From positions 16,791 through 80,790 of the forward strand of contig DF237297.1 of the NCBI GenBank assembly GCA_000708835.1: 64,000 nucleotides of DNA, given 5' to 3'. Positions within the stretch are counted from its first letter, which is position 1. The number at the start of each line of letters is the position of its first letter. Source of the stretch: Klebsormidium nitens (taxonomy: Eukaryota > Plantae > Klebsormidiophyceae). The translations under genes were made by a program, and so were the position numbers. The notes beneath the pieces are model-generated. The model worked only from the letters and a program-made list of their open reading frames with translations, was not told where the DNA came from and did no database searches. Of this stretch, positions 9,440 to 56,100 are shown in pieces.

Positions 9440-9830
9440 TCTTCGATCGGCGCATGAACATGTCAGGTCAATTCATAGGTCTGACTACGATTGCATATAT
9501 AATTGAACAAGGGTGATCACTCGCGCGCTTGGACCATGTCCATGGCCCCGCGTACGATCCATGTCACTCATGTACGAGATCCGGTATGCATGCCAGGCCC
9601 GGTGGCACATGCAAATATATCTATCGCTAGCTCTACGTCTACATTGCAATGATGCATGCATACTGCATGTGCGCAATGATGCTTTCTAAGTTGCAGCCTT
9701 ATCATGAAAATGCGACTCGCACTGCATGTGAAATGTGCGCCACGCGCAACTGAGCACTAGTGGTATATCATGTTTCAGCCATGCAATCGTTTTCTGACGC
9801 ATCATTCATACATTCATCGCGCGTATTACT
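9440..9830. repeat. Palindrome-dense island 1 (between IPMDH-like and TOM40 3' ends)
   Basis: GTGATCAC 9513-9520, ATTGCAAT 9643-9650, ATGCATGCAT 9652-9661, plus many 6-mers (CGATCG, CGCGCG, CCATGG, CGTACG, GCTAGC, TGCGCA, TCATGA, ACTAGT). Confidence 0.75.
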
Positions 9831-10386
9831 TAGTCAATGCAGAATTGACATTGGATGTTCCGACGGAATCTATGATTCATAGAAACGAAACATCGCGCGC
9901 GAGCCAAGAACACCCTTGACTTCAAGGAAGGAGATACACCGGATTGATTACATCGAGAAACAGGAAACCTCATGCTCGGATCAGCTTTGTAGACCATCTT
10001 CAATAAGTATCCTCCATATGGGTCAACTGAGAAACAGTGCCAAACATCTTGGACCGAAAGACTTGCCAGCACTTCTGGCAATCAATGTTGCCAGCCCGAC
10101 TTTGATTGACAACCAGCAGAACTCAGGAAAAGTTCAAGCTGCCAACTAGGTGCCCAGTTGGTGCTTTTCGTTGCAACCAACAAGATGGTTGTATGCACAA
10201 CCGTCAATCATTCAGAAGCATTTTTCAGAGGCGTCGCTTGCCCAGTCGCTCAGAGCTAGAGGACTTTTACTGACAACAAACAATCTGACCTACGCTTGCG
10301 ATTGTTGGATCGAAGCCTTCCCAGCCTCAACATTCCGCGACACTCACCTGATCCTGCCTAGCCATATCTACACAAAGAATCCTCAG

Positions 10387-13300
10387 CTACTCTCCGACAG
10401 TCATGCCAAAACCGAACTTGTAATCCTTCCGCCAGTGGTCAACCTGCACCAGCGAAACGGGGGTCAATCTTAAATCAAGGAGACTGATACATGCAAGGGA
10501 GGCTGTGAGAAGGAGTGAAAGCGGGAGGCTGCGAACCGGGAAGCTGCGATAAAACGATGATACGACGACCAGACAACTGACCGGGCGGATTATGCGAATT
10601 TGGAAACGGGCGATGTGCTAATGGATAGGGTCGTTCGAACTATAAGCCAAGACGGGGAACCCAATGAATCTGAGAAGCAAAAATAAAAAAGGACCAACAA
10701 TATCCTCAGTAAACAAGGCCCGAAAGCAAAAACAATTGCAACCCGTTTCCGTGCATCTACGTGCGTGGGCGCCTCATACCTGATCAGAACACTCGGCAAA
10801 TAAGCCGAGTACATATACCTCAAAAAGACTAGGCGAAACCGGCATTTTGGCACATCAAGTTACTAGATACACGGAAAGAGTGAGCCAAGATAAACAAATT
10901 TGGTAATCAGAGTTCGAGCAACCGACTCAACGGACGGGATGGCACAACTTAGGATGTTAAGAAGGCGTGCAAGGACGGGTGGCACGGAGCGCGCACCTCG
11001 GCCGACAGCAGCAGGTTGACGCCCACGTTCAACCTCTCCTCAAGCAGTGCGCCCACAACACCGTTCGTGTCCAGCTTCCCTCGAAGGCGGCACTGCGCTC
11101 AGCAAAGAAAAAGTTAGCAGAAAGATCTCGAGAAGGCGGGCTTAGTTGCAACCCGCGAAGACGACAGCCTGCTGAATCTGAGAACGTGAGGACAACAAGG
11201 TGGGTTTGGAGGAAGGCAAGTCGGAGCAAAGACCGATAGCAAAGGGAGAAACATGCTCATTCCTAGGGGCGGCGGTTCCACTTTCCGTAAGCTACTCTCA
11301 GCACTGGTGACATCCTCCCGGCCCGATGTTTCCAACAACTACGGAGCTTTACCGAAGTTCGACGAACTGTCCGTTCGAACAACCTCAGAGCAAAAGGTCT
11401 GTCGCCGCTACCCCTAGCCAAGAAGCGCCAGAGGGTGTCTGTTGTGGTACCCCTCTTGCAGACGCTGAACTCTGACATCGGAAACAGAATGGATAAGCCG
11501 CCCAGATGCTGGCTGCTGCCGCCGGGAAAACAAGCTTTTGATTTGATGGAGCGGAGCGACTCACTGATCTCAAGTTGTAGTCGTAGCCTACTGAGGACAC
11601 CGCCTCGCCGTTCTTCCAGTTGTACGACAGGTCGCTCGCAAGGTTCACCTGATCGGCCGAGTCACAGCCCTTTAGGTGGGTACAAAGAAGAATGCAAACT
11701 TCTACCCAGGGACTCGTTCACTTCCTCCGTTCGTCATATAAGAATTCCGCCCTTCTTCAAGAAAGCTCCATGATGACAAAGGTTCACAACCTGGGCGGCA
11801 TATGGAAGCACTTGCAGGCGCAGTGTGGGAGATGGAAAAGCGAATCCTGAATTTCGCAGCTATCAGACCCAAAGTCCGAGCGAGGAACCTCCAGAGACCG
11901 ATACGAGTCCATCGCAGAGTCCCAGATACGAGGCAGCATGTTTCAAGCCCTCTCAGTGGGGTGTCCGACCGAGGCCCCTGAAAAGATACGGGTGCCCGCA
12001 CGGGCCAGGCTTACTCAACAACTTCTCCCAGACGTCTTCATATCTAACTGAACCGACGAAGTGTCCGCCAATAATCCTTGCTTAGTTGCCCTGCTCAATA
12101 CCAGGTTTGCACACGTGCACTCGACTTTGCCCCGAATCCAGAAGGGTGTAGTGGGGACTTCCTCACCTTGTCACTGAGCTTGTGACTGTACGTCAGTGCC
12201 GCCATGCCCGTGCTGGCCACCTGCGCGGAGAAGACCTGCGCGCGCACACAGAGCACAATTACAATAAGGCAGCTGAGCGGAACTGGTGCCCAGAAGCGCA
12301 GTTGAGAGTCACCTCTGAAGAGACACGGTTACACTGAACCGACTGAACTGCATTTGCCCGGAACGACAGACCGAAATATTCGACTTTACGATGAGATCGG
12401 CATGGAGACCGCTCGAAACTTTCAGAATTACTGTCGCTTTTCTTGCAGCGTTGGTGTCCGTCTTACACCAGCCTCCAAAGGGTCTCTCCCGCAACTTGAC
12501 AAACGGTAAAGCATCGAACAGCTTGCCAAGGGCTCCCCCCGCCAGTCCACGAGCCAAAATCGTCGTTTTTAAGCTACTCTCCACTAATATTGGGGAAAGC
12601 TCCCTGGAAAACTGAGGAAAAACTGAGGAAAAACTTCCTGCTCTTCCGCGCTTTGGAATACGAGAAGCGGGAAGAAAAAAGAGCAAGCAGATGCAGTGAT
12701 GCTCTCACCCCCTTCCCTTCCTGGTGTCTCAGCGCCAAACCATAGCCCGACTTTCTTTGCTTGCCCAGCCAAAAGATTTCCCCGCCGAGAGAAAGGGTCT
12801 TGGTGACGCTCTGCGCAACAAAAGCACATCACTTCTGAGCTGAGAAGTAACTCAACTCCTCGCCGAATGGTCAGGGAACAGATCAAGGAAGCAAGTGCAT
12901 CGAAAACCGCATCCACTCACTAGACTGAGGCACAATAACACGTAAGACATGGGCTCAAAGCGCAGAACACGACATGAAGTACTTATGATTACGGATAGCA
13001 GAAGTCCTCAAAAGACGGCTCGTACCTGAAGGTAGTTAAAGGAGTAGAAGGCGTTGTTCCCCAGCTTTATCTGGGCTTGGTAGTCGGGTCCCTGCGAACA
13101 GAGATGTTGGGCAGTTCAATCAGCCAGTCCAGGATCCTGTCACGTGCATATTCCATCGTGGTACTACTGAGTGCAGTATTTGAAACGCCCATCTACGTCT
13201 TGAATGCTACGGCGCAAGGAAGACACCAAGTTACAAAAGCAGGGCGTGATCAAATCGAACGGCCTCTTGCATGTGCTCGAACGGATTCGAAGCACACAGC

Positions 13301-15694
13301 AAACGCCCAAAGAGTGGGAGAACATTGCAACTTTGCGAGATGCAAAGCAATGACAAGCATCGGAGCGCACGCATCGGCTCACCCGTTTATCGAAGTCGAA
13401 CATGGCGATGGAGCTATGTGGCTCTGGGCTAAGCTGCAGGCAAAATAGAGGAGGCAGAATTAGCAGCAAGGTGAGATGAGATGCAGTTTGCATTCTGGTC
13501 ACCGCCATCAAAGACAGCCACACCGCATTCCAGTGCAGGTGTGGGCACACCTCGGAAGAATCGAGCGCGTCAGAAAGTCATTAATAGGGCGAAGAGAAGC
13601 ATGTGATGACCGCGAAAACGAACAAACGAATCGTTTACGTCAGCTCGTTTTCTGAAACTGATGTTGCAACCCCTGAACCGGCGACGGGCTTCGACTCGGT
13701 TAGCAGCATGTCGACAGGAGTGTAGCAGTGTCCATACCTGAGAGTTCATCTTGAAGGTCCAGTCCTCGGAAAGGGCTATGACGGCGCGCGCGTTCATGGC
13801 CCCTGTGTTAAGCATACGACCCACCAGCATGCCCTGCACACAACAAAGCGGGGAGAAAAATGATGAGGTAAAAGAGCTGGATGATGCCCTCGAAATCATC
13901 AAGTTCGCAAGAAAGCAGGCCCCTGCAACAGCCCATTTGGATGGGCAGTGTTGGTTAATTTGCAAATTACATCAGCGCCTTTTTGTCCGGAACAAACCAG
14001 AGCCTCTGATGCAGATGGACCCTGCAAATGGCATCTACATCACAGCGCCATGACTTTTCAAACACAGGGCGGCCTTAAGTCCCAAAATTCTGCAGTGCCT
14101 GTCATCCAGTGTCAAGGCCCCATGAGCATACTCCAAGTCCACAGCAACATGACTAGATCCACCCGAATTGAGCCCATCTAGCCCACCCCCTGAGAAGGCA
14201 CACTATACAGCTTTCCGATCCGGCAATCAAAAGCAGCCGGCGCACAAGATACTTCCAAAACCCCCAAGCTGTTTGCACCCACGTCTCGCTTTTCAGCTTG
14301 AAAGACAAATTTCTCTTTTGAGCACCACTCTTCCAGATTCGCGAACAGGGCAGTCATTGAACCAGCAGCAGCGACAGCATTTGAACTTTTGGGTTCCTGC
14401 TTTGCTTTGTTAGGAATTTTTGCGATCGCACTCACCCGGTCCCACACATAGTTGGCTCCAAACTCATACTGCGAGTGCACCACCTTCACAATCTGCGGCG
14501 TCTGCTGAGGGACCTCCATCGGCCCCATCAGGATGCTGCAGAAGATCACTTATGGGTCAGTATCGCTGCTACTTATCGCAAAATAGGACACTTGCAGGAT
14601 ACGTGTCTGGACATCGGCGCATTGAGGGAAAGATGGAAGCGATTGAGGAAGAGCTTGTGGGCTTTTCCTGCATCAGCGAATGCTTAGTCAATCAAGGAAG
14701 TGTTTCTCAGCACTGGCTTCTGGAGCAAAGCAACTGTCCAAGAGAAGCTTGGGACTAGATCAAAGTGTCTGTCGTTGTTGGATCTACCATGGCTCAACCA
14801 CAATCTTAACTTCAATGCGTCAATCGAACGACCAAAGCAGTGCCTGGGATGGCGTCCATATTTCGAGTTGGCGGGCACCTTCAAATCCGTTCTTACCCAT
14901 GGGTCAGCGCAAACTTTGGGCTCAGCGGTCGCGTGAAGTCGAAGCGGCAGCCCTCGAAAAGCTCGGGCTTGAGCGAATCTGAAAGTCGATGTGAAAGTCA
15001 GCAAATGGTTGGCATTTGTTCGTCTTGCAATCAAAAATATCAGATGTCTGAATACTGTACTTGCAACAGGGCGCTGCACACAAAGCTGGCAGCTCTGCCT
15101 ACGGGCAAATATTAATCAATCAAAAGATAGGGTCTGCCCATTTGGAGTGCACTTGAAGATTTGAAATGGCTCGCAGTCAGATCTTGCAACTTTAACCCAC
15201 AGATCGAATGCAAGGATGCCTTTTGTTATATGACAGTTATCAAGATATCAAGATAGGACAACCGACCGATTGCTTGATGGTAATGGTGACGCAGCAAAAG
15301 TCCTTCGTTGCATGCAGTATTGATAACTCAGAAATTGCAGGCCAGTTCATCTGAAGCAGACTGCTAGTTAACCTACAAATGCTCTTAATGGCGCCTTTGA
15401 AAGCTGATCATTTTAAGCATCAAACCAATCTTGAACAGGCGAATGATGGGGGATGCTGGCTGCCCGCAAGCAGACCGCAAGCAGATACTCACAAAGCGCT
15501 TCCTTTTGGATCTCCTCATACTTGACTGGCGTGGGCAAGTTCAAGTAGTCGGTGCGCTCAATCTCTTTCGGCGGTTCGACCAACTGCTGAAGCCCCACGG
15601 GCGGCCCCGCTGCGCCTTTCTCTGGAACTGTGCCCAAAGGGGGCGGCAGAGGAGTGGTGACATTAGCATCTGCGTGACTGATTGAAGCCCCCAT
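10387..15694 (-). CDS. TOM40: Mitochondrial import receptor subunit TOM40
   Basis: Exons give [14 protein letters not shown] (~15496-15694), [14 protein letters not shown] (~14896-14979), [88 protein letters not shown], and the last exon 10387-10443 [18 protein letters not shown]. All are collinear with plant TOM40. Confidence 0.95.
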
Positions 15695-16405
15695 TGTGAC
15701 CCACAGCAGAGTCTACTTTGAGTTGGATGCACGCTGCAGTATGTGTCACCGCTTTACTGCTTCAACGTTCCTCGGCAGCGAGCTGCCGTCTGCTGAGTTG
15801 AGTGTTTCAGGAGTGCTACTCAACTGCCCCCGTCATTCCAAGGAACCCCTGATCGCGCTTAAATGAATGACGCATGCATGCATACAATAGATGAACAACG
15901 GCAGCTTCGTTCCACTCTCAATTCTGCCGAGTCTGCAGCCCACCAGGGAGCACGTCAACTGCAGTCTGTGAAAGGCCCCTTTCAGCCCGGTTGACAGTGA
16001 TGTTTGTAGCTAGCTAGACTGACCTCCCTGGCGACCTGCCAGTGCTTGAGAGAGACCCCCTCCCAGCGCACCCGATCTCAGAAACTGCCAGAGAACTCAG
16101 CCATTGGCATGCCCCCCTCAGCCTCTGGCCTAGCAGCTAGGGGGAACTAGATTGATCACAGTTCACACCAGCTGAGCCAGCCCAAGTTGGCGGGAGAAGT
16201 TTACAGCTTGAGCCAATCAGACCGGATCAAAGTCCTAGTTCAAGCCACGTCACCGCATTCAGCAGCACCCCCGATAGCCTAGCTGGCAAATCTGCCACAC
16301 TGTGACTTCCAAGTTCAATTTCAAGTTCGTCCCCTTGCCCCTCACGCCAGTTTGGCTCACGCTCAAGCTTTCCTCGTCCTCCTCTTGCTGGGGCCTTCTC
16401 TAGAC

Positions 16406-19400
16406 ATGGGCTTCGCCTCTGTTGCCATCAGCCCGGTGGCGGGCGGTTTCAAATGTTGCACGTGCCAACGCCAATGCCGGCCCGCCAACTTGAGAGGCGC
16501 CGCTGAGGTGGCCATCTTTTGGCCAAGCGAGCGGGCATCCTTCCACAAGAAGAGAGGTGGGCACTGGGGGCCTGCGGTTAGGAGCCGGAGGAGATTTGAC
16601 GTGGCTGCAAAAGTTGGGGAGTCTGATGTGGTGAGCTTTGCTTGATTAGTACCAACAACCAAGTAGATTACATTCTTAAGGTATAGGAGGATGTAGAACC
16701 ATTTTTTCTGCTCCTCTGTTGCCTTTGAGGCCCCTCTTTCTCCCCCTTTTTCTATCCCGATGTATCAATGCCCTTTTCAACAGGATATTTCGATCCAGCG
16801 GGTTGATCCTCGTACTCCAGACGAGAAGTGTAGCCCGCTGCCCACTACTTGTTAGTCATGTTGAACCACTAGATTCACGATCACCCTCGCGCAATGTAGC
16901 CCCAGCATCGTAGCATTGCTCTGGTAGGATCTGCTCTTATTCTAAAGCACGATTTTTGCTTAAATCAAACTCTTCAGTCATCATATAATTGAAGTATGAA
17001 TGAATATGCCGTGCGTTCTTTTCTTTCAGAGCCCACAAAATGGAGCGCCAGCTGGCGGTCCAGAGGAGAACGATATGGCGGAGCGGGTGAGTTGGCCGCA
17101 ATTCTTCATAAGCAACACTTAGAGAGTGTTCGAGCGGGTGGTGTAAATAGTGACGCGCCAGTTCTGATCATGTAGATGGTTCTCCCAGGTATGCAACTTG
17201 CGACAACCTGAATGAGGCTATTTCGTAGGATTTTCCTGTATATTTACCTGGCCACGGGCATCCTGAAGTGGATAAAACCCAGTCGCCGCAATCAGTAGTG
17301 TTACGTATCTCATCGCGTTTCGAAGATTTCTTTCAAAGTGGGAATTTGATGTATCACCGTGCGTTGTCAATTGTGGAAGGTGGGGAGTTAAGGACCTCGG
17401 TTTTGTAAAAGTTTCGACTTGTTTTTAATCTCGTCACAATCAAATCAAGGACCTTGACACCACCTTTGCATTCAGATTCCATGCCATAATGTGGGTCCCT
17501 ACCTGGAATCCAAGATCAATGGGCACCACTTTTTACTGGTGCCAAGTTGGCTGCAACCTGTCCCAAAGAATCAGACGTTTGCCAAGAGCCATATCCCTTG
17601 AGACCACTCTTTCTTTACTCCCAGTTGGCGAAAGCAGAGGCGGAGGCGGCAGCTCTGCGGAAAGAGCTAGAGTCGAGGAAAGCAGTTGTCGGGGCAGATC
17701 TGGGGAAGCCCCGTCCGGGAAACAAGAGGATTGATGGGACGGGGCTACGGGAGGTTCTGTGGGAGGGGCCGGGAGCGCAGAAAGAGCGCGCCAAGTTTTC
17801 AAAGTGTGAGTGGTGACACTCTGTTCGTCTCGCGGGGGCAGGGGGGAAAACCAATCAGTCTGGTTGCGAAAGCATCTTTAAAGTTGGCTGACCATCCTTG
17901 TTGATGGAAAGCAGAAGGTGAAGGAAAGACCCACGGTCTATGGGTCCATGTTGTCTTTTCGTACTGACAGGACAGGCTATCTTACAGCTGCTGATGATTT
18001 GACGGTTGACCTGACGCTGCGGTTGCAGGAACGGTTTGGGTCTGGAGAAAAGAGAACTCCTGAATTCAGAACGATAAGACACCTGGTCCTAAGCAAAGCA
18101 GGAGTTCCGATTGGGTCTGAAAGTATGAAGACGAACTCGACGCATCCAATCCTGCACTCTGGGGGTAGTCGTTTCAGAAGACCGGTTGTAGCAGACGCGC
18201 GTCGCTCTGGGCCTGATGGTCGGCAGTGACTTCAACAAAACTGCAAAGGAACCCTCTCTGAACCACCAACGGCTTGCATCCTTTCCTCTGGTCCAGCTGC
18301 CAAGTCGGCCAAGTGGGGCCTCTCCGAGGCGGAGCTATTCATCTCCCGAGGTGCGGGCGAAGGCGAGATGGAGGCGATTGTGGGGCCCGCGACTGACGAA
18401 GGCGCTGAGAACGTCGTCCGAAGAAATCTGATCATTGGGGTTGCGCTCGCTGTCGTGGCGGGCGTGCTCGCTTTCGTGAGGCGCCTTCTTCTGATTCCTG
18501 TCTTAGCCGGTTGCGAGCTGACAGGCTCAATCTCATCTTGATGGCAAATTGCATTCTTGAAACGTTTGTTGCTGATGAAAGGCTTCTTTCCAGTGTCTTT
18601 CCATCAGGAATTGCGAGTCGTGACTTATACTCGACGTGCCCTGCAGACGCTTGTCCGTCAGAGTGATTGACCCGTAAGTCTTCTGCACATCTCTTGCTTT
18701 CTCGGCAGCAGCGACCTAAATTTCCCCTCCTTGGTGCTAGGTTCGTTTTCCCGGCGGCCGCCCCCAGCCCTCCAAGCCGCTCTTCTTCTACTTGGTGCCG
18801 CTGGTCCGGATACAGGGCCTCCTCCCACAGCTGCAACTAGCCATCGAAGGTGAGGCCCTGTTCCGCTTGGGTCCGCCCCGCGGCCAGGCCGCCCGCATGA
18901 ATCATTGATTTCCGCGTGCATGCTTTGTTGAAAGGACCACCAGAAGACAAGAATCTCACGTCTGAGCTCTGAAGAAGGCAGCCAACAGCCGTGCTGATGG
19001 CCGCAGGAAGAGCCAGCTACATTCCGGCACGGTCAACGGATCTGCATATTCATGCACGTTCTTCATGGCCGACTTGTCGCTTCGGAAGGATGCCGTTGCA
19101 GGCGTCACAAGAGTTTGGATTGTCGTGCCAATGCTTCATACGCTTTCAACGGGTTTGCCGATGCAAACGGTGCAGCCGCAAACGATTGCAAGGTTCCCTC
19201 TTCCAGCACTCGGGAAACGGGCCCTGGCGCTGTCTGTGACCACGTAAGCAGACAACGGTTTGGAGCATGTCTGAAGTCATGCTGACGTCACCTTGCTTGC
19301 GTCATGCAGAGGGCCGATTGGCGGACCTGCGGGAGCAGCTGAAGACAATCGTGGGGGAGCCCAACAACCTGAAAGATAACCTGCTCAAGTGAGCGCCGTT

Positions 19401-21709
19401 TTGCAATTTTGCGACAGCAGGGGTGGTTAAAACCTGCAACTCTGATTTAGGACTCCATTTCAGCTTGAAGACGTGTGCTCTTGTAATTCTACAGATAGCC
19501 TATCCAATGGGGGTGACCCTGTTGACTTTGAGTCGAGAGAAAGCGATTGACGAATGCATGTGGTGCTTGAGTGCAGATGCGAGTGCAGGATCTGCTTCTA
19601 TGAAAATCAGATTTTGTGGCCGGTAAAGGCGCCCCTTTCCGCTTAACGGCTCGAGAGGCCCTCGTTTTTCCGGTTTCAAGCCTCAAAGCCGGAAAGAGTT
19701 TGGGGAGGACCCGACAAACAACGAGCTTTTGTCCTGACCTTGGTTCCCACTTTGAGCGGATAGGCTTCTTTCTGTCCGTGGGTCCGTTCGATGTCGCTCT
19801 CTGGGCTTTTTCTGACACCTTTGCAATGATTTCAGTCTCTAGAGCAACACTGAGACGTTAAGGCGTGTACCGGCGTCAATACCAGGGGGGTCAAAATGTC
19901 GACCCACATGAGAACCTGCAGGACAGTCTATTGAAGCCTGCATATGCAAACCAGAAGCACAATCAAAGAGACAGGAGAAAAGCAGATGTAGGTCGTGGAC
20001 ACGAACCGGAAGGACGTCAAAAGAGACAGGAAAAGGTATCAGAAAGTAGAGAAGCGAAACGATAGAGCGTTTGTGTGTGCAGTGCGGCCAGCTGGTTGCC
20101 TACGGACGCCGAGCTGGACGCCGCCAATCAGGTGGCGTTTGACGTGCTCGAATACGTGGACCAGGTATGACTACGAGTCCCTTAGTTTGTTGCCCAATGT
20201 GAAATTTGAAGCCAAGTGTCTCGGAATTTCGACAGAGCTTCCCAATGAGTAGCTTGGACTCTCACTTAAAGGTCTGGATGACGGCTCATTCTCGCGTACT
20301 CTTTCTTCGACGGTTCTCGTCCAGAGCTTCGACTGTTCATTCAATACGACGTAGGACTATGCTGGATTTAAGGGCTTGTGGATTACATGCGTACAAGCTC
20401 GGCTTCCGACGGGATCGTCAAAATGAACGAAATAGGTCCGAATATCTCTTATCTGGACTGAGTGTCGGATGCGCCAGATCTTTGATGGACTGTTTCGGAC
20501 TTCTCGCGTGGTTGAAACGTGTCTGAAGGACGAAGACTCTCCCGTCGACGATTTTGAGGACGGCAGCCATTCAGAATGCCCGCGTTTACTCATCTGCGCA
20601 TAACCTGTTATTCGACCATTCACGAGGCCATCGAGGGAATGAAGCTGCGCACTCGAAGGCAGTTCCTTCTTGCAAGAATCCAAAACGAGCCCTCCGCTCG
20701 GGTCGGTCCGCTTCCATCCGCATCAGACGTGTGGTTTCAGTCAAGGAACTGCGCTTATCGTCGTTGCGCTACTAGGTACCGAGTAGCGGCTCGAGTATTC
20801 TCTCGAACGGCTCGAGAAACTGTCCGGCGTTGTTTTGGAGCCATGCACTGGGAGATACTTTGCGCGCCAATTTGGGAGTGCGATCTCGTGTTAGGGTGGT
20901 GGCTTTCGATCAGGCTTCGCTTTTGAAGCTTGTTCTCCAGGTCTTCCTCTGACTGAGTTTCCTGTCTGTGCAGGCCGACTCCAAAAAGTACTTTGACAAT
21001 TTTGGCGAGCCATCCGCTGCTCAGAGGTGAGCGACGCCTCCCCCTCGAGTGTCAAAAAATCAGACGTAGAAGGCTTGCGAGATACATCCAAACAAGTCTT
21101 TTTGCAGCAAAGAAGATTAGAGACTATTCTTGGGCAACGCTGACTCTCAAACTTCGGAAACTTGGAAGTTGAGCTTGTTGGAGGTGTTCTGCGGGCACGA
21201 TCATCGATATCGTGTCTTTCTAACCATAATAATCGGCCTTCCTCACCGCAGATCCGAGTTTTCCAAGTTCAGCCTTCAGTCTATAAAGGTGAGAAAACTC
21301 TTGTATCTTGCTTGCCATGTGGGGAACAGCACTGGATGATTGCCTTTTTAATTTGAGGCTTTGTCTACTTCCTCAAGCAGGGTAGTCTCGGATTTGGATC
21401 GTTGATCATTTGCGGGGTGTATTACGGGCACACGTTTTGGTTCTTAAGCTTCGCCATTGCGATGTTGTCTTCTGTTGGCGGCTCAGACGGGAGGAATTGC
21501 GCGACGCTGACTGCTCCAATCCGAGTATAATGACCGCATGTGCACAGTCAGATTGCGAAGAAGTCGAGGGCTGTTTCAAATTGAATCTCTTGCAGGCCGC
21601 TTCTCGCAAGCTGGACGAGTTCTTCAAGCTGATGCCCTCGGAAGACGTGGCCGCAGCAAAGGAACAAGTGCTCCGCACTAGTCTACCAGAGGAACAACTA
21701 ACAATCTAG
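16406..21709 (+). CDS. Uncharacterised putative plastid/thylakoid protein (transit-peptide-like N-terminus, coiled coil, RR-hydrophobic segment, helical C-terminal domain)
   Basis: In-phase exons: 16406-16630 MGFASVAISP…, ~17030-17089, ~17625-17806 LAKAEAEAAALRKEL…RIDGTGLREVLW, ~18297-18475 KWGLSEAELF…VRRNLIIGVALAVVAGVLAF, ~18742-18850 PSKPLFFYLVPLVRIQ, ~19310-19389, ~20084-20164, ~20964-21016, ~21252-21288 and ~21596-21709 AASRKLDEFFKLMPSEDVAAAK…*. Confidence 0.75.
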
Positions 21710-21959
21710 AAAATAAACCCGTGACCTCCCCTTTATTGTTCGATGTTCCTGGCTTGAGGGATGACAAAACGGGTTGGCAGCTAGACGCATCTGGTCCAAT
21801 TGGAGTATCCAGCACGTCAGAGGGCCCGCCGCGTGTACACGGTCTTAGTAAGACATATCCAACGCCACTGAGAGTTGCGTGCATGATAGATCTGCAAGCT
21901 TCCATACAATACCACGTCTGTATATTCTACCATGGCGTATACCGTCTGCACCGCAACCT

Positions 21960-22330
21960 CTTGAAATCCCATGCTAATTATAATTAGTGCAGTCTCAGTA
22001 TGCAATGTGTGTCATTGTGGTAACTTTAGTACATGTACACGGGCCGCAGCCGCGGCCGCGTTTATCTATAATGATACAACAGCGAGCTCGCGGCGCCATG
22101 TGTGCCAGTGGCTTCCGAGCCTTGGAAGAAGCATATAATATATAGTAATATAAGAAGCCTTTCTTATGCCTACTCTCGGAGAGTGGACGGTATAGCTGCA
22201 TCATTGGCCCACATTCGCACATGCCCAGTAGCTTTATATACGTGCTAACTACTCAAATACATGTATAGCCGGGATATGGATTCGAGAATCATCAATGACT
22301 GATTGGCGCGGCCGGGCTGCAGTTTAATGT
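21960..22330. repeat. Palindrome-dense island 2 (between plastid gene and TEN1 3' ends)
   Basis: CTAATTATAATTAG 21974-21987, GTACATGTAC 22029-22038, CGCGGCCGCG 22051-22060, GCGAGCTCGC 22082-22091, and ATACATGTAT near 22257-22266. Confidence 0.8.
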
Positions 22331-22596
22331 TGTTCAGCTCTGCCCGGAGCAAACTATGGTTTTTGCTGTGTGTCTGTTGTTGCCGTGTGTCTACCTGGCG
22401 TTTCTGGCAACATTCAGGGGCTTTAAATTCATGCTTCTTTGCTGTACAAGCTTTGAGCAGCCCGTAGCAAGTATTAGCTTATCATATAGTATCAACATTT
22501 CAAAAACATGGGAACTTGTACAAGCGTACAGCAGCATATAGTTGCCAGAGGGTGCTGGCCTCCAGTCAATCAAGCTCAAGTTATTATAGTACAACA

Positions 22597-42989: not shown

Positions 42990-43320
42990 CCGCACGTCAA
43001 TGATTCTATAGAGCTTGACAAGCGTACCGTACCTAGTACACTTTGCTATATGGGCTCCCGGTCCAGTACGCATGCATGAACTTGGTAGCGTATGATTCTG
43101 CAATTGGACAATTCGTGGAACGTTATCATATATCTAGACGGTGCTAGTAGGCTTAGTAGCGACTATTCACGTCGTCATATGATCATCATGCGCATCAATT
43201 GTTGCACACCGGCTATTGCATAGTGTATGGACGGACGGTGCAGGCCGGGCAAACATTGTGAAGAGCTAGTTCATTGAAGACAGTTGCGCTGCGACAAAGT
43301 CAGACCTAGCTCGAGCTAAA
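42990..43320. repeat. Palindrome-dense island 4 (downstream of the RUB 3' end)
   Basis: TAGCTCGAGCTA 43307-43318, plus CATGCATG, ATGCGCAT, CATATG, TGATCA, TCTAGA, AACGTT and CAATTG twice. Confidence 0.7.
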
Positions 43321-43870
43321 CTGCGGTCTTCATTGCCAGCACTACTGAGAAATCATGATGATGCCACGGAGATACGAATATTGAGGTCACTAGACGGGCT
43401 GCACTGATGCGCATGCATGTGAGCTAGTTCTTCTGGCACTGAACTATAGACGATATTTTCAACAGATGCATCGAGTGACCTCGCCGGGCTGTTGCATGAC
43501 AGCACTTGTGGAACGCCGGCTTTCATTCGCAATGACATCCGAAACCTCAGCATTTATATCCATCGCATGTACTTTGCCATTGGGACACCGGCAGATCATA
43601 CAAGCTCAGCGGCTGGCTCACTTTGCCTTTTGTCAGCGCCGCGCTCGCAGTCCAAGCGGATGTGGTTAAACAGCACAACGACATGCCTGACTGCCATGAC
43701 GGCTGTGGTCTGGTTTGGACTTCACCTAGATCGGGCATCAGCCAGAGCGGCGCCCATTCAGAGCACAATATCAGCTATCTAAGGTCGAGAAGCGTGTACA
43801 ACGTATGTTTAATGGTCCGCCGGGCGTAATAAGATGGCAGATAGAAACAGATCCGTCGTTGCCCAGAGGA

Positions 43871-45489
<1,619 letters not shown>

Positions 45490-46316: not shown

Positions 46317-48221
46317 ATGCCTGCCACTTCCGCAGTGGTTGAGCGCTTGTCTGTCCCTGCGGCGCTGGAGAAGGAAACTCTCCATCACCTTCCATGTTCC
46401 ATTGGATACAATGGGCCCGCCAATGTACACAGCTTCTTCCAACCAAAAAGTACAGGTGAGCTGTTGCTTGAAACCATCCCTTTCAGGGCTCACTACAACA
46501 GCTGGAAAGGGAAGCAAATAACCATGGCTGGGCAGCATTAAGCTAATCATAAGCCACATAATGAATATAAGTGGCAGACCTGCTTACTGGCTTCGATTTG
46601 ATCACTCCATCATCTGGAGTGCCTTTACTGGTCCTGACGCAGTCATGTCTGGTGTATTCATGCCACGTTCTAAAAGTGCTTGGGAAGACCAGCAGCCCAA
46701 GAGGTAGTAAGTAGTACCTCCTTTGCTGTTGTCAACCTCCATCACTAAGTGAACCAGTCTTGTTGCAAGTTTATGAGAGTAATATGTCCAGACAAAGTTT
46801 GCGGAAGAGCAAGCTAACGTCTGTAAACCATGGTGACTTCTCATCTCAAGAATGAACGTTGTGCTGTCATCAGGGTCCACCTTTGATGGGGTGACGATTG
46901 TGGAAGCAGCCTTTCGAGGACGGAAGTTGCTTGGGGCTACTGTAGACATTCCGGCAGGTTATCAAGGTGAGTTCTTTTCTAAACCAGTGCAGGAACCAGG
47001 CTCCTGTGCCTAGAAGCCCACCAGCCCGTAGATTCAGCGCCAGGCCTTGACTCCGCTGCCCCATAGTACTGGATTCGGGGTTGCAAAAGATTTACAGTCT
47101 TCATTGAGAGTTGAGAATGGGCAATGAGGATGTCGACCGCACTCGCATGCGGTGGTGTAAAGCAGTGCGGGACATCAGGGATCACAGCCTGTTAGAGATT
47201 CAGGTCATTGTTCTTGAAAAGGAGGGCTTGAAAATCTTTGTCTGCAATCTATGTAGGACTGGTTCTGGCCAAGCGTCCACTGGACGCATCACATGAGAAG
47301 GAGGGTGAGGCCATCCAGGAATGGACGGCGGAGGCAACCTTCAGCGCTCTCAGCTACTGGAAGCATGACACCACACCAAGCTCCGCCGATGGTGTCAGGC
47401 GCTGTTTCGGGTGGTTGCAGTTGGCAGATCTGGTGAGCAGGACGGCCAAAGTATACCAGGCTGCCTGGTGCAGCCGCTTCAGACAGTTTCACCCTTGTCT
47501 TGTGGGAGGCTCTACGAGCTATTGGAGAAGGGATCTAAATGCCGAGCTGAAGGAGCAAAGCAGTAACTTCGATATGATGTAGGAGCAAAGCAGTAACTTC
47601 CAGTGCATGACTTCTTTTTTGTCGTCACCTTCTCACCTGATTGAAAACCTGAGAAGGTCTCAAATGTTTGCAAATTCAGTTGCTTGCTTGGGAAGCATAT
47701 ACTATGATATAGGCCATAGGCATCTCGATTTCTTTGTCGAAGGAAGTTCATTTTCGAGGTTCAACTCGAAAACCTCCTTTGCACCATCGCTACAGATTCA
47801 TTCACCGGTGGATGGGGCCACGCATATGCAGATGCTACAGAAGATCACTGCAAGTGAGTATTGGATCGGGACTCCCATCGCCAAAGCAATTTCGAGACAT
47901 GCTTGGAATGTCAGAAGCGACTAGTTTTGCAAGCTTCTTTAACCTCTCGTACTAAACAATGCTCTCTATGTGTTCCATCATGACGTCCTAGTTGCTGAGG
48001 AGAACACGTCTCCTGATTCGACGGAGTTTCGGCGCAACTATCGTGATCACACATTGGGCTTGTTGGATCAAGAAAGAGGACGGAATTTTTTTTTCACATT
48101 ATTCTGTAGGACTGGAATCATTTAGCCGCCCTCATAGATCTTCTACTGAAGCATCGACCGTTCGTTTCTCTTTGCAGGTGATAGCAGGCCAGGGTCGAAA
48201 CGCAAGTTGCCAGCTGCTTGA
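46317..48221 (+). CDS. RNASEH2C: Ribonuclease H2 subunit C
   Basis: In-phase exons: LHHLPCSIGYNGPANVHSFFQP (46317-46456), AAFRGRKLLGATVDIPAGYQG (~46874-46966), WTAEATFSALSYWKHDTTPSSADGVRRCFGWLQLADL (~47257-47442), IHSPVD… (~47796-47853) and SDSRPGSKRKLPAA* (48178-48221). Confidence 0.88.
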
Positions 48222-48349
48222 GATGCTGTTCTTGCACCCACTACACTCGTTCAGTGCGTCTGCATTGAACCACCGTCGTACAGATTTGGCCTCGTATGAA
48301 TAACGATTACGGGTCACATGGTCATTTATCCCCACCTCACATATCATGC

Positions 48350-48620
48350 ATTGGAAGCTTCGATCGTGCAGCCGGCGGGGCGCGCATATATGAACAACTT
48401 GACATGATATGGTCAAATCAAGCTAGTTGCGCATATAGTCTTTTGATGCACAATTAGGTTTTGCCGCTGCTCAGAGTCCGACCTGGCTCATTGATCAAGT
48501 CGTATACAATCCGATGAACGTTCCCTGCATGGCCGCCAAAATATCTTCAACCACTGCATGATCATTTAACAACACCGGTAGCTTCGTGTTACTGTATCCT
48601 CCATGCAGGCAGCGTGCGCA
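48350..48620. repeat. Palindrome-dense island 5 (between RNASEH2C and EMC8/9 3' ends; weaker)
   Basis: CGATCG 48361-48366, GCCGGC, GCGCGC, CATATATG 48385-48392, TGCGCA, TGATCA twice and GTATAC. Confidence 0.55.
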
Positions 48621-48780
48621 TGTTGAGAGCCTAGCACAATACCCTCCAGAAAGTCGCTCATTGACCAGGACAGATTGAAGATGACTGCGCAGTTCATTAC
48701 TTGGAAAAGTCCGTGGTAGAGGTATTCCTCAATTGAAGACACATTTACTGAGTGAAAATACCGAGAAGCATTCGCTCCGT

Positions 48781-50895
48781 CTATCTGAAGAAGTCGAGAT
48801 TCCTCCAGTCTCTGCACAAGACAGCGACGCAAAAACTGTCAGGCTACTGTGCAGAATGAGCATCGCTCTAGATGTGTATTTCTGAAATGGTCACTTCAGT
48901 AGTCTCTTTTCTGTGCCGGAAGGTCCAGAAAGAAAATACCCAGCAATCTCGAAGTCGAAGTCGAAGTCAAAGTCAAAGTCAAGTAAAGCAGCGCGACTCC
49001 AAGTCTTCAAAAACGATGGTACGCTAAGTACCTCGGAGGGTCGAAAAACGTTTCAAGACTCCTTTAAGAAGTTATTTCAGATCCTTCAAAGTTGAGAGAC
49101 GGAAAGAGTTCTCACTTATAGAGTTGATGACTTCAAATTTGGCCGTCCTCAAACAACAAAGCACTTCAACCGAACACCGCTTTCAAAACTTTCAAAACTC
49201 CAAAATAGAAGGTGACGGGTGACAGCGCAGCTTACTTGGAAACATCGTCAAGGTGGTCGTCGAAGTCTGTGAGACTCCGGTACTTCTTTCCCGCCACGTG
49301 GTCGACCAGTACACTTCCCGCCGAAGCATCCCGCAAGCTCAGGCGAGTGTTCCGCTGCCAACTTGATCGAGCGGTGGTGGTAAAAAGCTGCATGAGGGAG
49401 GCAAGGACAACTGGGTGCCACAAACCACGAACCGAGGACATGGTCGTTTGATACATACGACTGACCGTGGTTGGGTCAGACTTCGTGGCCGACATGAGGA
49501 AGCATCTGGGCATGTTGCTAAACTCGCTGGTATGTTTCGATAATGCAGAGGTTACATTGAATGCAACGATCCGGGAAAAAATCTAGTCTCACCTGCAGAG
49601 TAGCTGTTGATTCCTTCCGCAGGTTCTGTAGCTTCGTGTTGTCAATCTGCATACAAGAAGGTTGCTCAATAGAGTGTTTACTACCCGGGAAGACACACCA
49701 GGCCGAAAATCAACAAGTTGCTAGGTCCATGAAGTCAAGGACAGACAGAAGACGAAGACTTGGGTGAAGTGCTTGTGATCCGTAACACCTGCAGTCAGGC
49801 TTGCATCTTGCTGGCATGCCTTGGAGCATGAATCAGGCAGGTCTCGCAAATCAAGCTGCGACAGAATCTGTCATCCCAATTCAAGGAGACTTTGCATGAC
49901 TAGTTTGATAGGGGCCGCCAGGTTACTGATGGGCGCGTGTTATTTACTTGGCAACTTGAGCTGACACTCAGGCAGAAGTCTCACCAGAATCACCGCTGCC
50001 TGCGGGACATATTGAGCAATCTTGTCAGCAATCTTCTTGGCAGCGGAGCCCAGATCTGCATCGTTGTACCGTTCATTTGCATGGTAGTACCCTACGATCG
50101 AGAGGCCGCCGGCCTGAGACGAGTAATATTCATCAACCTGCATCAAATCAGAATCACTCATCAGTGCTTGCTGAGATGTTTGTTAGGCTGTCAGGAACGA
50201 TCGCAGATATGTGCTGACAGACCTTCGGACCCATTTCATTAAGAATAAGGGGTCCAATTCACCTACTTCTACAACACGTTCTCCTGGACAGGCAAGTTCA
50301 GACTTAGCATTTGTTTCCGGCAAGAAAAGGGATGGAGAGACAATGAGATTGTCAGCCTCAATCAAGCCTCAGCATTTGAGAACCCATCACTGAAACGCCG
50401 GTGCTTGAGAGCAAAGAAAGGTGGATCAACAGCAAGAAGGAAAGTTAAGGAACATGAACTATTAGAACCACTTGGCAACAAAATAACTCTTGTATCTAAT
50501 CTCTTGCTGAAACAGAGGGGCGGTCCGTAAAATGTTCTTCAGGCAGCACAAGGGTGGCTGGCTAGGTACCAGTCCAACCGCAATGACGATTGTTGTTGAG
50601 ATGCAGACGATGACAGGGACTGCAAAAGCTTCGGGCAAATTACCTGAGCCAAAGCAACTTCCAGCATGGGCGCCAGCTCTAGATGACTGTGAAAGAGCGG
50701 CACCGCATCGTGGATGTCGACCGCCCCTCCCGCAGCGACAATTGCCTGTGCTCCAGCGTCGTCATTCTGAGGAGACGCGCTGGACACCTTTCCAATCAGC
50801 AGCCCATTGACAGCAGCAGCTGGATGCTTGATAGCGTGCAGGATCAGTTTTATGTATGCTGCCTGATGCAGGCTGTACTTATAGCCACCCGACAT
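48781..50895 (-). CDS. EMC8/9: ER membrane protein complex subunit 8/9 homologue
   Basis: YSLHQAAYIKLILHAIKHPAAAVNGLLIG…DAVPLFHS; IVGYYHANERYND; IDNTKLQNL; LTDFDDHLDDVSK|DWRNLDFFR*, with the last exon at ~48781-48811. Confidence 0.93.
48949..48984 (+). repeat. Imperfect hexamer microsatellite (AAGTCG/AAGTCA)n in the last EMC8/9 intron
   Basis: TCGAAGTCGAAGTCGAAGTCAAAGTCAAAGTCAAGT. Confidence 0.8.
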
Positions 50896-52128: not shown

Positions 52129-55077
52129 ATGAAGCACAGCTACCTGGACAGATTGCCGACAATAGTTTCTCTCCTCTTGCAGGTGACACTGGGCGACAGA
52201 TTGAATGCCATCTCCCATAGAAAGCCGCTCCCCGGTGTCAATGGCACGGCTGCCCAATCACGGGGCTTCAGCGCTGCAGCTGCGGCCGCGGAGTCAAATG
52301 ACCCTTCCCTCCCACAATCGCGTTTCCGAAGCCGCGCTCTCCCGGAACCATCACACGCCCCCCCCGTTGTCAAGGTGTCCAACCGCCACGATGTCGTTGG
52401 TGTTCTAGGGGGCATCAGCCCCCGCGCGACGGCAGACTTCATGCGGCAGGTCATCCAGGCGACCCCCGCCAACTCCAACAAGGACCACATTCCGCTCGTT
52501 GTGTCGAGCATCCCCCAGATCCCGTCCCTGTCTGCGCCCATTCTGAACCGGCCTGCCGGGCCAGCGCTAGATCAGGCGGTCGTGTCCCCCCTGCCAGCCA
52601 TGCTCGAGACTCGCAGGTTTCTGGAGCAGTCTGGTGCTCGCTGCATCGTCATGCCCTCCAACATGGCGCACTTCTGGTGTAAGTACTCATCGCCTCATTA
52701 TCGCCTGCCGTTGGGCACCGGATATGGGACAGAGACTAAGCGGTTACATGTATCATTGGTGCTTTCCCCTTGCTTTATCAGGTCAGAGCTATACCGTAAA
52801 TTAGACGTTAGTGGCAAACAGGGATGGATATGGACGTCTGAGAAAGAAGTTCAGTTGTAGCATTGAAGTCTACAGCCTGATTGCCTTGTTGGGAGCGAGT
52901 CCTTTGTTGCTCTTGGCTGTACTGCCAAAGAATCACTGGTCGCCTGGTTCTAATGTATACCGTCCCTCTCCTGGTCCAGACGACCAGCTGGCGCTGGACT
53001 GCAGCGTGCCATTCCTGCACATTGCGGATGCGGTGGTTGAGGAGTTGGACCTGGTGAGAGCGCAACGTAACATGCACTCTGCCAGATCTGAGGCTTGTTT
53101 GGAAGCAATCAGGTCCTTGCAGTGTCAGATTCCTGGAGAGCAACGACTCAATCGGTCTTTCTTCGGGGACGTGAGATTGTCAGATTCTCGGGTTTGTCAG
53201 TTAAGGCTCATTCGTACTCTTCTGCAATCTCTTCCCTCATGCTAACAAAACTCCGAGAGCCTCATGTACACACCAAGGTGCTTCAGATTGCTTGTGAGAC
53301 ACCGACCTCGTCTGGCTTCCCGAGTCTGATTTCGTTCCTGGACGCGCAGGCGAAGCTGGAGCCGCTGGAGGCGGGGAGTCGGCCCAAGGTGGGGCTGCTG
53401 GCCAGCGAGGCCACGCTGAAAGCCAGCATCTACCAGCAGAAACTGGAGGCCAGGGTGAGCAACCGCGCGTGGGTGCTCAGCTTCACAATCAGCAAACGTG
53501 TGTAGCACGGCGGTGCTGGTGCAACAAGTTCTGACGCAATGCCACCCGTTGGTGGAAAGTCTCCCAGCCTGGAGCGCGGGAGTTTTCGTACTCAAAGGTC
53601 TCAAGATGAGGGAGCATGAGGGTTGCTGATATCCAGCAGGGCCGTTCCTCTTGCCGTATCGCAATAACTTCTGATTGCGAGATTCGCTCTACTTAATCAC
53701 ACAACAACCCCGGTATACCTCTTTTCTCCTCTCAACCACTTTCCATCAAAGGGCGTTGCCGCTCAAGCCTCGATTACGTGGCAATGACGTATCGGGGAAT
53801 GGCCGAGTTTTGTCGACGTCCGATCTTAAGCCCTCCGACGCTGTTTCACATATTAATGCAGAAGCTTGTATGACCAACAGGGCAGCCCCGCACCCAGCCA
53901 ACTTACCCCGCCCGTTTCCAGGCTCGTGGGACCTCAATTGACCTAAAGGAATGGCGTCTTGCCAACATCCTTCGAAGCTGAAGTGGCTGAATTGTCTTTC
54001 GTCATCGTGGTTGCACCCTTGCTGTCCGACACGGCCCTTCTAGCACTGCGCCGCACGTGAGACCCGGAAAAGGAAATCATGAACCAGGTGCTTGCCCCTT
54101 CTCTCGAGCAGCTGTGTCTTTCTGCTGCGCAGGGGTACACGGTGGTGCTGCCTGACCGCGACACCATGGCCCACGCGGTGCTCCCCGGGATGGAGGCTCT
54201 CGAGCGGGGCGACAACGAGGGCGCCAAGAACCTGCTCGGAATCGGCGTCCAGGTACGTGCGCCCGCAACAGCATCTCTGCTCGCCGGGGCTCGTCAGAGT
54301 ATGGGCCGTCTGCTGAAGGCTGTGTTTGGGGGGCGGATTGCTTTTCGTGGGATCGTTTGTTGTTTGTCACAAAGAGGAGAATGACCAAAAGACGATGCTT
54401 TTGGAGGAGCGGCGAAACAAAGCCTTTTAAGAGACGAACATTGGGACGGCTTCTTCGTGCGTATGGCGATTCTAAGGGGGAACGTCTTGCCGAACCTGTT
54501 AAGCAAGGACCCACACTTTCTTAGGATTCTGGTGGGGCTCAAGCGAGCTCGACGTGAATCTCGTTGTCTTTTGGTTTGGGACGACTTCAGAAAGGGCTTT
54601 TGGCGTGTTTTCACATTTTGCAATTGAGAGATTGGAAATTCTTGCGCTTTGGCCGCGACTCCAACGGTTGCCATGATATCGTTGTGGGACGATTCAATAG
54701 CGCCAGCTCCAAAAGCGGCTTTGTCATCAGTTTATGAAGACAACTCCGAACTCCCGTGGAGGGGCACCCACCACTACTACTACCCAAAATTACTTTCAAA
54801 GCGATGCTTGTTCAGCAGCACCGTTCATTCGCGTAAGTCATGCTGTCAAGCAGAGTGTGGTGCATTGTCATCATTCCTCAGCTCTGGCTTTCCTGTGTGC
54901 CAGATGCTGCTGGTGAACGCGGTGAACGTGGTGATCCTGGCCTTCAGCGAGGCCAGCTCCGTGTTCCCGCCGTCGGACCCCATCCTGAAGCGGTGCCTCA
55001 GCCCCACCGCAGCCCTGGCCAGGGCGACCGTGCGCTGGGTCCTTAAGACCAGGGCGGACGCCACTCCGGGCGTGTGA
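52129..55077 (+). CDS. Aspartate/glutamate racemase-family protein (At1g15410-like), lacking both canonical catalytic cysteines
   Basis: VVGVLGGISPRATADF…HIPLVV…GARCIVMPSNMAHFW | YDQLALDCSVPFLHI | KVGLLASEATLKASIYQQKL | GYTVVLPDRDTMAHAVLPG | VNVVILAFSE…DPILKRCLSPTAALARATVRW. The start codon is uncertain. Confidence 0.88.
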
Positions 55078-55199
55078 ATAGTCAAATAGGTCCTGGTCCG
55101 AATACATGTTCTGAATCTTGAGGCTGTTGTGTTGAGCTTCACGCAGGTTGCTCATCGGTTCCATTTGTCATTAAGTAGTAAAGACAGATTCAACCTTAG

Positions 55200-56100
55200 A
55201 CCGATGGTAGCATAATCGTGTACAGATTGCAAATGATTTGATCAGACCGGGTCTGAATTGATGGAAGCATAATGGTCGATCGATCGGTGTCCAGGCAAAA
55301 GCGAGGGATAGCTAGATAGTCGAATAGTACGTTAGAGCGGATTTGAAGTGATATTAACATTTTCTCCGGGCACGCACATTGGCATGCCCTCAGGTTAGCC
55401 AGCCAGGCACGAGCTGCTGCGTTCGGTACGTCTTCTTCGACCTACAAATCAGAAATGTCAAAAGTTTTAGTACTTCGATGTCTTGAATCTCGACAGCGGA
55501 TTGGATCAGTAGCGAGTCGTGTAGTGTTCGCTTTGCATGAAACATGTCACCCACTGTCACTGCATATACTGCGACATGGCAACCACGCGGTATCGAATGA
55601 TCGGATTGCGATTTTTATTCTTTCAATTCAGCCAATTAATTTGTTTAGCTCGAATTGCTAGCCGCGCATGCGGGATCCTGAATCAGCTGAGCCGTACAGC
55701 AGCCGCCGCGCATGGTACGTACGTACAGCTCGATGGACCGGCCGCCCTTTTAAACAAAGTTACTAACTGTACGCATAGCAGGCCATAGGCGTGCAGCTCG
55801 AGCGACTAGTCGATCGATCGAGCATATCACATGCATGCAATGATGACGGCCGCCGCGCGCCGCAATCATGAACGCGCGGTACATTCATGCAGTCTGGCAC
55901 TGTAAGTCTCATGCAGCGCAGCTGGCAGGCATGGTAACAATTGGGCATTTACACTGCAATATTCGCACATTGTGCGACATGGCACGCTTCTCAGTCAGGC
56001 TCCTGGCGTACCAATAGTTAAGCAATGGTGAACATGCGCACAGTCGGACCACGTAATTATAATCAGTCATTCAACCATGGATCCCTCCGCGGCTGCACTT
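55200..56100. repeat. Palindrome-dense island 6 (between racemase-like and C1orf109-like 3' ends)
   Basis: GTACGTACGTAC 55715-55726, CGACTAGTCG 55803-55812 and TCGATCGATCGA 55810-55821. A hand count gives 20 palindromic 4-mers in 55781-55860, against about 5 expected at 1/16. Confidence 0.85.

Follow-up and report, generated by a model that had tools for sequence, protein, structure and literature searches.

Palindrome-rich zones beyond gene 3' ends in a 64-kb region of the Klebsormidium nitens genome

Short palindromes are densely packed in six islands of the 64,000-nucleotide stretch of Klebsormidium nitens contig DF237297.1 that is referred to here as the window (positions on the DF237297.1 record are window positions plus 16790). 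These islands are compositional zones beyond gene 3' ends, mostly between converging genes, and are not discrete elements with a sequence of their own; the term "element class" used in the initial annotation of this DNA is therefore too strong.

Palindrome islands and the genes around them

Across the window, palindromic 4-mers occur at a density of 0.061, which equals the random expectation, and the density reaches 0.10-0.15 in the 500-bp bins at 9501, 22001, 37501-38500, 43001 and 55501. A coordinate-free scan (200-bp scanning window, density of at least 0.105) showed that the islands picked by eye in the initial annotation are real, since all six were recovered as the largest segments: 9399-9823, 21877-22297, 37661-38377, 42972-43234 (with 43396-43509), 48289-48534 and 55554-56010, at densities of 0.12-0.16. 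Smaller G+C-rich palindrome patches were also found by the scan inside exons and at 24373-24567. Comparison with a shuffled background placed every island above its own dinucleotide shuffle for palindromic 4-mers (z 2.5-5.8). The pooled islands contain 482 palindromic 4-mers. Expected counts are 337 for an order-2 Markov model (z 7.6), 339 for shuffles that preserve the purine/pyrimidine pattern (z 9.3) and 277 for shuffles that preserve the weak/strong pattern (z 14). Testing islands that were picked by palindrome density is circular, and the test was therefore repeated on gaps set only by stop codons or conserved exons. Palindromes exceeded the expectation of a trinucleotide model in every one of these gaps (z 1.9-4.4). 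When the three gaps bounded on both sides (9095-10350, 37411-38641 and 48222-48780) were pooled, 15 of the 16 palindromic words were above expectation.

Gene strands were obtained in three ways. In addition to the annotation, conserved exons were found by tblastn of the open reading frames (ORFs) of the window against a syntenic contig of a more distant relative (L006), and a strand-asymmetry score based on 4-mers was trained on the annotated genes of the window. Gene models at 1-25 kb and 50-64 kb are based on conservation and strand asymmetry, and consist of exons that were not joined into spliced protein models. The asymmetry score was consistent with the annotation and with the strands of conserved exons, and switched from + to - at each of the five junctions that had been claimed as convergent. 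Switches from - to + were located near 1.6, 15.7-16.4, 24.5, 45.3-46.3, 51.5 and 59.9 kb by this score and by AT skew. A Pfam scan of 30 ORFs of the window gave a single real match, the racemase described below; look-ups of window ORFs by exact sequence gave no match.

Island 1 (9399-9955, core 9399-9823; like the other islands, it is assigned to neither strand) lies in a convergent gap whose flanking strands were taken from conserved exons. It is faced by the 3' ends of a + gene at 4719-9094 and of a - gene at 10351-15694, the latter with 10 conserved exons at 10994-15694 in the comparison with L006. The exon-to-exon gap (9095-10350) contains 108 palindromic 4-mers against 81.7 expected (z 3.0). 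The 3' end of the - gene is less sure, as the best match of 10351-10458 is in a + frame; one exon of this gene was confirmed by a separate search, and its 5' end faces the island-free head-to-head gap 15695-16405. Island 2 (21824-22682, core 21877-22297) lies beyond the last conserved exon of a + gene at 16406-21291, which has nine exons conserved in L006 that give the strand on the left; the - gene on the right is predicted from strand asymmetry and AT skew. The 1 kb past 21291 gives z 1.9.

Island 3 (37652-38377) is located between the stop codons of two annotated genes. One is a giant IDM1/PHD-like gene (25010-37410, +; 2356 amino acids in the annotation, with conserved 5' exons) and the other the F-box gene KFL_003480090 (38642-40358, -), for which a 510-amino-acid ORF at 38645-40174 (-) shows 98% identity with the K. 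nitens protein. The stop-to-stop gap 37411-38641 gives z 4.4 and contains the densest 80 nucleotides of the window (37988-38067), where 22 palindromic 4-mers were counted against 4.8 expected, in agreement with an earlier hand count of about four times the expectation for one 80-nucleotide stretch.

Island 4 (42935-43517, with dense parts at 42972-43234 and 43396-43509) lies 360-900 bp 3' of the stop codon of an annotated RUB/ubiquitin-like gene (43871-45336, -), whose 3' end points towards it, and the 1 kb 3' of RUB gives z 2.4. This is a tandem interval of 3.5 kb that runs from the RUB 3' end to the F-box 5' end and contains no other annotated gene, although it may hold an unannotated transcript; the rest of it (40359-42930) is near baseline, with a density of 0.070. 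Island 5 (48289-48604), the weakest, is located between the stop codons of the annotated RNase H2 subunit C gene (46317-48221, +) and UPF0172 gene (48781-50358 and extending past 50358, -), and the gap between them (48222-48780) holds 48 palindromic 4-mers against 36.9 expected (z 1.9). Island 6 (55137-56154, core 55554-56010), the strongest, begins 60 bp past the stop codon of an Asp/Glu racemase-family gene (52171-55077, +), which was identified by its Pfam match and has five exons conserved in metagenomic relatives. The 1 kb past this stop codon gives z 4.1, and the island contains short runs of GTAC, TCGA and CATG units; the - gene on the right is predicted from strand asymmetry.

The islands begin 60-480 bp past stop codons and measure 0.25-1 kb. 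All six lie beyond gene 3' ends, as judged from annotation, conserved exons and strand asymmetry, and five are at + to - switches. Every tail-to-tail junction of the window thus has an island, as had been claimed. Because island 4 is in a tandem interval, the association is with 3' ends, or termination gaps, and not strictly with convergence.

Head-to-head gaps had been described as free of this texture, which is largely correct, and introns lack it as well. Density is 0.050 in 21 introns and 0.064 in the six head-to-head gaps together, compared with 0.119 in the islands. In five of these six gaps the density is 0.057-0.072, with 0.057-0.062 in gap 15695-16405; the exception is gap 24400-25010, which is enriched in G+C-type palindromes (0.090, z ~3). 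Whole convergent gaps exceed head-to-head gaps in palindrome density (Mann-Whitney P = 0.015). The G+C-rich patch at 24373-24567, upstream of the IDM1-like gene, has a density of 0.128 and an alternating-CG run, and bins of raised palindrome density were also seen upstream of the IDM1-like exons in two metagenomic relatives (L003 and L004).

It is scarcely credible that the islands are an artefact of composition or of selection by eye, in which DNA that is non-coding, strand-symmetric and richer in A+T would merely look palindromic. Raised self-complementary dinucleotides and alternation do lift the expected density from 0.0625 to approximately 0.08-0.10, and longer palindromes largely follow from the 4-mer content (order-3 model, z 1-2.6). 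The excess, however, survives the dinucleotide shuffles, the order-2 Markov model and the shuffles that keep purine/pyrimidine or weak/strong patterns (z 7.6-14), and it persists in gaps that were delimited independently of palindromes. Palindrome density is normal in other AT/TA-rich segments of the window, such as 16694-17319 and 10636-10876.

Composition of the islands

The enrichment concerns palindromes as a class. All 16 palindromic 4-mers are above the trinucleotide expectation in the islands, by 1.26-1.97x, compared with 1.03x outside the islands; only 42% of non-palindromic words are above their own expectation. The bases on either side of a self-complementary dinucleotide are complementary to each other in 39.1% of cases in the islands and in 24.1% in introns (Fisher P = 4e-19). 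For inverted arms of 2 nucleotides, the enrichment is 1.48x with spacer 0 and 1.32x with spacer 1 and fades by spacer 6-7, so that both even and odd centres are involved. The longest perfect palindromes in the islands are of 14 bp; the longer ones are mostly explained by the 4-mer content, and a small additional signal extends to 10-12 bp.

Steps between purine and pyrimidine account for 0.60 of all steps in the islands and 0.47 outside, and runs of purines or pyrimidines are depleted 3-10x. Palindromes are enriched within both alternating and non-alternating words. Avoidance of UV dimers was considered as a cause of the alternation and rejected by reasoning, since UV acts on dipyrimidines by changing C to T, which leaves them dipyrimidines.

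An excess of direct repeats was seen only at offsets 4 and 8, which represent a period of 4 and its multiple, and it stems from short runs of palindromic units, GTAC, TCGA and CATG among them. By position counts, tandem duplication reaches z 4.8-6.1 for a unit length of 4; units of 1, 3, 5 and 6 are at expectation, and z is 0.0-2.2 for units of 2. Counts of 4-bp runs give 10 for palindrome-family units against 2.6-3.3 expected, an excess that is mostly covered by an order-3 model, and tandem duplication of non-palindromic 4-bp units in the islands is at expectation (14 against 10.7-12).

CATG is the commonest palindromic 4-mer (65 in 4 kb), and the commonest 6-mer, CATGCA/TGCATG, occurs 28 times in 4 kb and in all six islands. 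Relative to the rest of the window, ATATA/TATAT is enriched 18x and TATA 12x, with only 0-2 copies of TATATA per island. The observed/expected ratio of TA is 0.96 in the islands and 0.52-0.56 in introns and head-to-head gaps; that of CpG is 1.05 in the islands and 0.67-0.87 in other non-coding DNA, the value of 0.67 belonging to head-to-head gaps. Ordinary non-coding DNA of K. nitens thus has strong dinucleotide biases that are lacking in the islands. The G+C content of the islands is 46-50%, which is below the window mean (CpG islands are defined by a CpG observed/expected ratio above 0.6 and G+C above 50%). Deamination of 5-methylcytosine (5mC), turning CGCG into CATG or TGCA, was rejected as a source of these words because CpG is not depleted.

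The initial annotation had also suggested a target for symmetric DNA modification, in which gene ends would be marked by clustered recognition sites of one or a few methyltransferases (CATG, GATC, CG). This agrees with the top rank of CATG, with the presence of CATGCA/TGCATG in every island and with the undepleted CpG. A few enzyme specificities, however, cannot account for the similar enrichment of all 16 words, among them words without CG or A, together with symmetry at odd centres, and a CpG ratio of approximately 1 argues against long-term 5mC at CG. Such a function is very unlikely.

The islands are diverse in sequence, as first noted, and do not look like copies of one transposon or satellite. 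No similarity between islands or of islands to the window was detected at E <= 0.1, apart from a few short repeats at chance level. No tandem arrays were reported within the islands by Tandem Repeats Finder (TRF), no family was matched in an Rfam search of the islands, and neither terminal inverted repeats above chance nor transposase remnants were found in them. These results also make it improbable that the islands are the traces of transposons that repeatedly inserted into a tolerant zone and were excised again, in which case footprints retaining some end bases of both inverted termini, together with duplicated palindromic targets (TA, TTAA), would be palindromic themselves. Fast turnover, possibly by replacement of whole segments, would suit such scars, as would the strong enrichment of TA and AT and the two TACATGTA-type words in island 2. 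An excess of approximately 160 palindromic 4-mers in 4 kb, however, would need one footprint per ~25 bp, and palindromes of G and C only are equally enriched.

A structural signal at the 3' ends was the remaining suggestion based on function. In the sense of a hairpin, it was not supported. The minimum free energies of 150-nucleotide tiles (ViennaRNA) compared with dinucleotide shuffles gave mean z of -1.3 to +0.7 on both strands, as in controls, and thus no excess of hairpins. No strand polarity of words was detected in either half of the islands, which are strand-symmetric, and the canonical poly(A) words TGTAA and AATAAA show no pattern in them. A role in termination or as a boundary that does not involve hairpins is consistent with these results. 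In expressed sequence tags of K. subtile, neither an AAUAAA nor a UGUAA signal is seen, and enrichment ahead of the cleavage sites is limited to C/U-rich words (PMC1868727). The depletion of pyrimidine runs in the islands, together with undepleted TpA, suggests from word content that the islands may lie beyond poly(A) sites and processing signals.

Turnover in relatives and possible origins

Sequence in the islands changes rapidly. A Logan contig of a related alga (L002), with exons approximately 84-90% identical to those of K. nitens, has the orthologous F-box/IDM1-like junction. The 140-160 bp adjoining each stop codon align at 72-79% and intron interiors are 65-74% identical (z 3-20), but no homology of the 933-bp core of island 3 to its 955-bp counterpart was found in either orientation. 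In simulation, homology is still obvious with 50% of sites changed. The core is unalignable in spite of this sensitivity, which implies a turnover at least twice that of introns in raw differences. The L002 gap nevertheless keeps its size (955 bp in place of 933 bp) and its texture, with a density of 0.130 (z 5). In the more distant L006, all non-coding DNA is saturated, yet the gap orthologous to that of island 1 contains the highest of 51 bins in the 20-kb locus (44 palindromic 4-mers per 400 bp, compared with ~20). The palindrome property thus persists in relatives while the sequence changes. Between L003 and L004, conservation is 96% just past the racemase stop codon, and the sequences are unalignable ~870 bp downstream. 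The palindrome signal in their gap is weak (z ~1-2.5), which indicates that the strength of the feature varies among lineages; the orientation of the downstream gene is uncertain in this pair.

We tentatively favor, at a little less than an even chance, the explanation that complement-templated repair or replication, acting in a hypermutable termination gap, has left the islands as its scars. DNA of the zone would undergo unusually rapid rewriting, in which a few bases are copied from the complementary strand, for instance by short template switches in replication or repair synthesis, by snap-back and fill-in at broken ends, or by the repair of symmetric staggered breaks. Each event would leave a short dyad-symmetric patch irrespective of the bases, and the scars would not be removed because the zone carries no promoter and probably lies outside stable RNA. 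Strand-symmetric DNA rich in alternating purines and pyrimidines, with every palindromic 4-mer over-represented, would be the outcome. Both the mutational cause and its localization are what we infer, the latter possibly through events of termination zones such as polymerase collision, torsional stress, topoisomerase II action or fork stalling. Uniform enrichment of all words at even and odd centres is what copying of the complementary strand is expected to produce, the more so where the DNA is unique, unconserved, strand-symmetric and faster-evolving than introns. Local complement-templated mutation had been among the causes proposed initially, and it fits best, in view of the uniform class enrichment at both kinds of centre, the faster-than-intron turnover and the lack of conservation.

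Template-switch mutations that make or perfect inverted repeats are among the nearest described systems (Loytynoja and Goldman 2017, PMC5453318; Walker et al. 2021, PMC7954356). In these mutations, copying gives reverse-complement identity that is blind to sequence and would lead to uniform enrichment of the whole class, as in the islands, where local reverse-complement identity is in excess irrespective of sequence. Such events have been described, however, as scattered genome-wide in primates, and not as a regional signature of termination gaps or as a force that reshapes 4-mer composition.

A link to topoisomerase II is also attractive. The enzyme reportedly prefers alternating purine-pyrimidine repeats, as Spitzner et al. 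(1990, cited in PMC1920260) are said to have found. De novo duplications of 2-4 bp that depend on topoisomerase II (bioRxiv 10.1101/2020.05.03.075358; PMC8795545) share the 4-bp scale of the islands, and torsional stress is expected in convergent gaps. That signature, however, duplicates any 4-bp unit, whereas in the islands only palindrome-family units are in excess (10 against ~3), and the general duplication signature was not found.

Several points weigh against a mutational origin. No mutational event was seen directly, as even the closest relative available, L002, is already unalignable in the island. The result of fast turnover comes from one junction; L003 and L004 also lose alignability in the gap core, but with a weak palindrome signal. 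Introns may be constrained or shielded by transcription-coupled repair, which would inflate the contrast with them. Template switching alone predicts neither the strong purine-pyrimidine alternation (0.60 against 0.47 of steps) nor the sharp restriction of island 4 to ~0.5 kb within its 3.5-kb interval, and the general fill-in signature of topoisomerase II was not found (non-palindromic 4-bp units, 14 against 11-12). Selection would account just as well for the retained gap size (933 and 955 bp) and for the persistence at orthologous junctions.

Selection for a zone of two-way termination, torsion relief or chromatin organization, in which dyad-symmetric alternating DNA would serve both strands alike, is the main alternative, possible but doubtful. 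The islands might, for example, hold symmetric enzyme sites (such as those of topoisomerase II) where positive supercoils pile up between polymerases that converge, or act as a nucleosome-disfavoring mark of the place where RNA polymerase II stops. Islands occur in six of six gaps at 3' ends and in one of six head-to-head gaps, the latter weak and of G+C type, and the property and the gap size outlast the saturation of neutral sites at orthologous junctions. The 18x excess of ATATA/TATAT and the 12x excess of TATA also speak for a selected zone. On the other hand, a protein or RNA signal should prefer particular words, whereas all 16 are similarly enriched, CCGG and GGCC included; the island core evolves faster than introns; and the islands have only 0-2 copies of TATATA each, no RNA structure and no polarity towards either gene. 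Formation of Z-DNA or cruciforms absorbs negative supercoils, and positive ones are expected between converging genes, so that such structures would absorb the wrong sign. Furthermore, the C/U-rich character of the pre-cleavage words of K. subtile, set against the 3-10x shortage of pyrimidine and purine runs in the islands, would place the islands past the processing signals.

Precedents for a selected zone exist in yeast, and no poly(A) signal of Klebsormidium is known (PMC1868727). Bidirectional termination zones of yeast with the palindromic UAUAUA efficiency element lie between convergent, and some tandem, 3' ends (bioRxiv 10.1101/2022.11.02.514956). Strand symmetry and AT/TA alternation are common to these zones and the islands, and the yeast zones have been argued to serve both strands. 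They measure, however, ~120 bp, contain one motif family, UAUAUA/UAUGUA/UACAUA, and have nucleosome depletion and mapped cleavage sites, sense and antisense, on their flanks. The islands, known from sequence, are 250-1000 bp long, hold few TATATA words, are enriched in all 16 palindromic 4-mers including those of G and C only, and evolve faster than introns. Short inverted repeats with low nucleosome occupancy at yeast poly(A) sites (Miura et al. 2018, PMC6420913) resemble the islands in being self-complementary, ApT/TpA-rich and at gene ends. They were chosen for cruciform potential, whereas the islands consist mainly of spacer-less palindromes of 4-10 bp without excess folding energy.

A stronger form of selection, a DNA code defined by symmetry and not by motif, whose dyad-symmetric, alternating purine-pyrimidine DNA would recruit a symmetric enzyme such as topoisomerase II or shape chromatin, halt polymerases from either side and free torsion between convergent genes, appears rather unlikely. 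If true, the islands would act as a two-way terminator or torsion sink in a eukaryote and keep this function despite complete sequence turnover. In bacteria, repetitive extragenic palindromic (REP) elements and bidirectional intrinsic terminators (bioRxiv 10.64898/2026.03.23.713779) are likewise palindromic DNA between convergent genes. REP elements, however, are repeated families with stable stem-loops, whereas the islands are unique, eukaryotic and without hairpin potential. Full-text searches of the literature found no description of palindromes at convergent junctions in eukaryotes, nor in Klebsormidium.

If complement-templated rewriting is the cause, the gaps would be a natural record of regional complement-templated synthesis or break repair where transcription units collide. 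The signature is marked enough to change 4-mer composition and could be tested in a streptophyte alga that stands near the land plants. Should the islands be selected, they would represent a terminator or boundary defined by symmetry alone, which bears on how 3' ends are specified in Klebsormidium, where a poly(A) signal has not been found (PMC1868727). Either way, the islands may aid annotation by marking gene 3' ends and strand switches in the K. nitens genome, and they show how sharply "neutral" intergenic DNA may depart from introns in the rate and spectrum of change.

Gene order and other features of the window

Gene orientation along positions 1-64000 is a near-perfect alternation (- + - + - + - - + - + - +), with four of the strands read from the asymmetry score only. 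Eleven of the 12 junctions are convergent or divergent and one is a tandem pair; under random orientation, the probability of at least 11 of 12 is ~0.003.

A 10-bp tandem repeat with the unit GAAAGTCGCG is present in 4-6 copies in two blocks at 41958-42175, within 2.6 kb that carry no other annotation between the start of the F-box gene and island 4. The palindrome TGACGTCA occurs three times in the window (19283, 35258 and 57445), with ~1 expected, and is absent from the islands.

The last exon of the IDM1/PHD-like gene (34426-37410, 994 codons) has a strong purine skew, with a GC skew of 0.35-0.38 and an AT skew of 0.35-0.53. Its protein identity to a relative is 65%, and it appears to be a fast-evolving, low-complexity tail. 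In the two metagenomic relatives (L003:10175-20759 and L004:10253-20789), the racemase and IDM1-like genes share a strand, with the former ~5 kb upstream of the latter. In K. nitens, four genes separate the two, and the racemase gene begins ~15 kb past the end of the IDM1-like gene. This indicates a local rearrangement of gene order.

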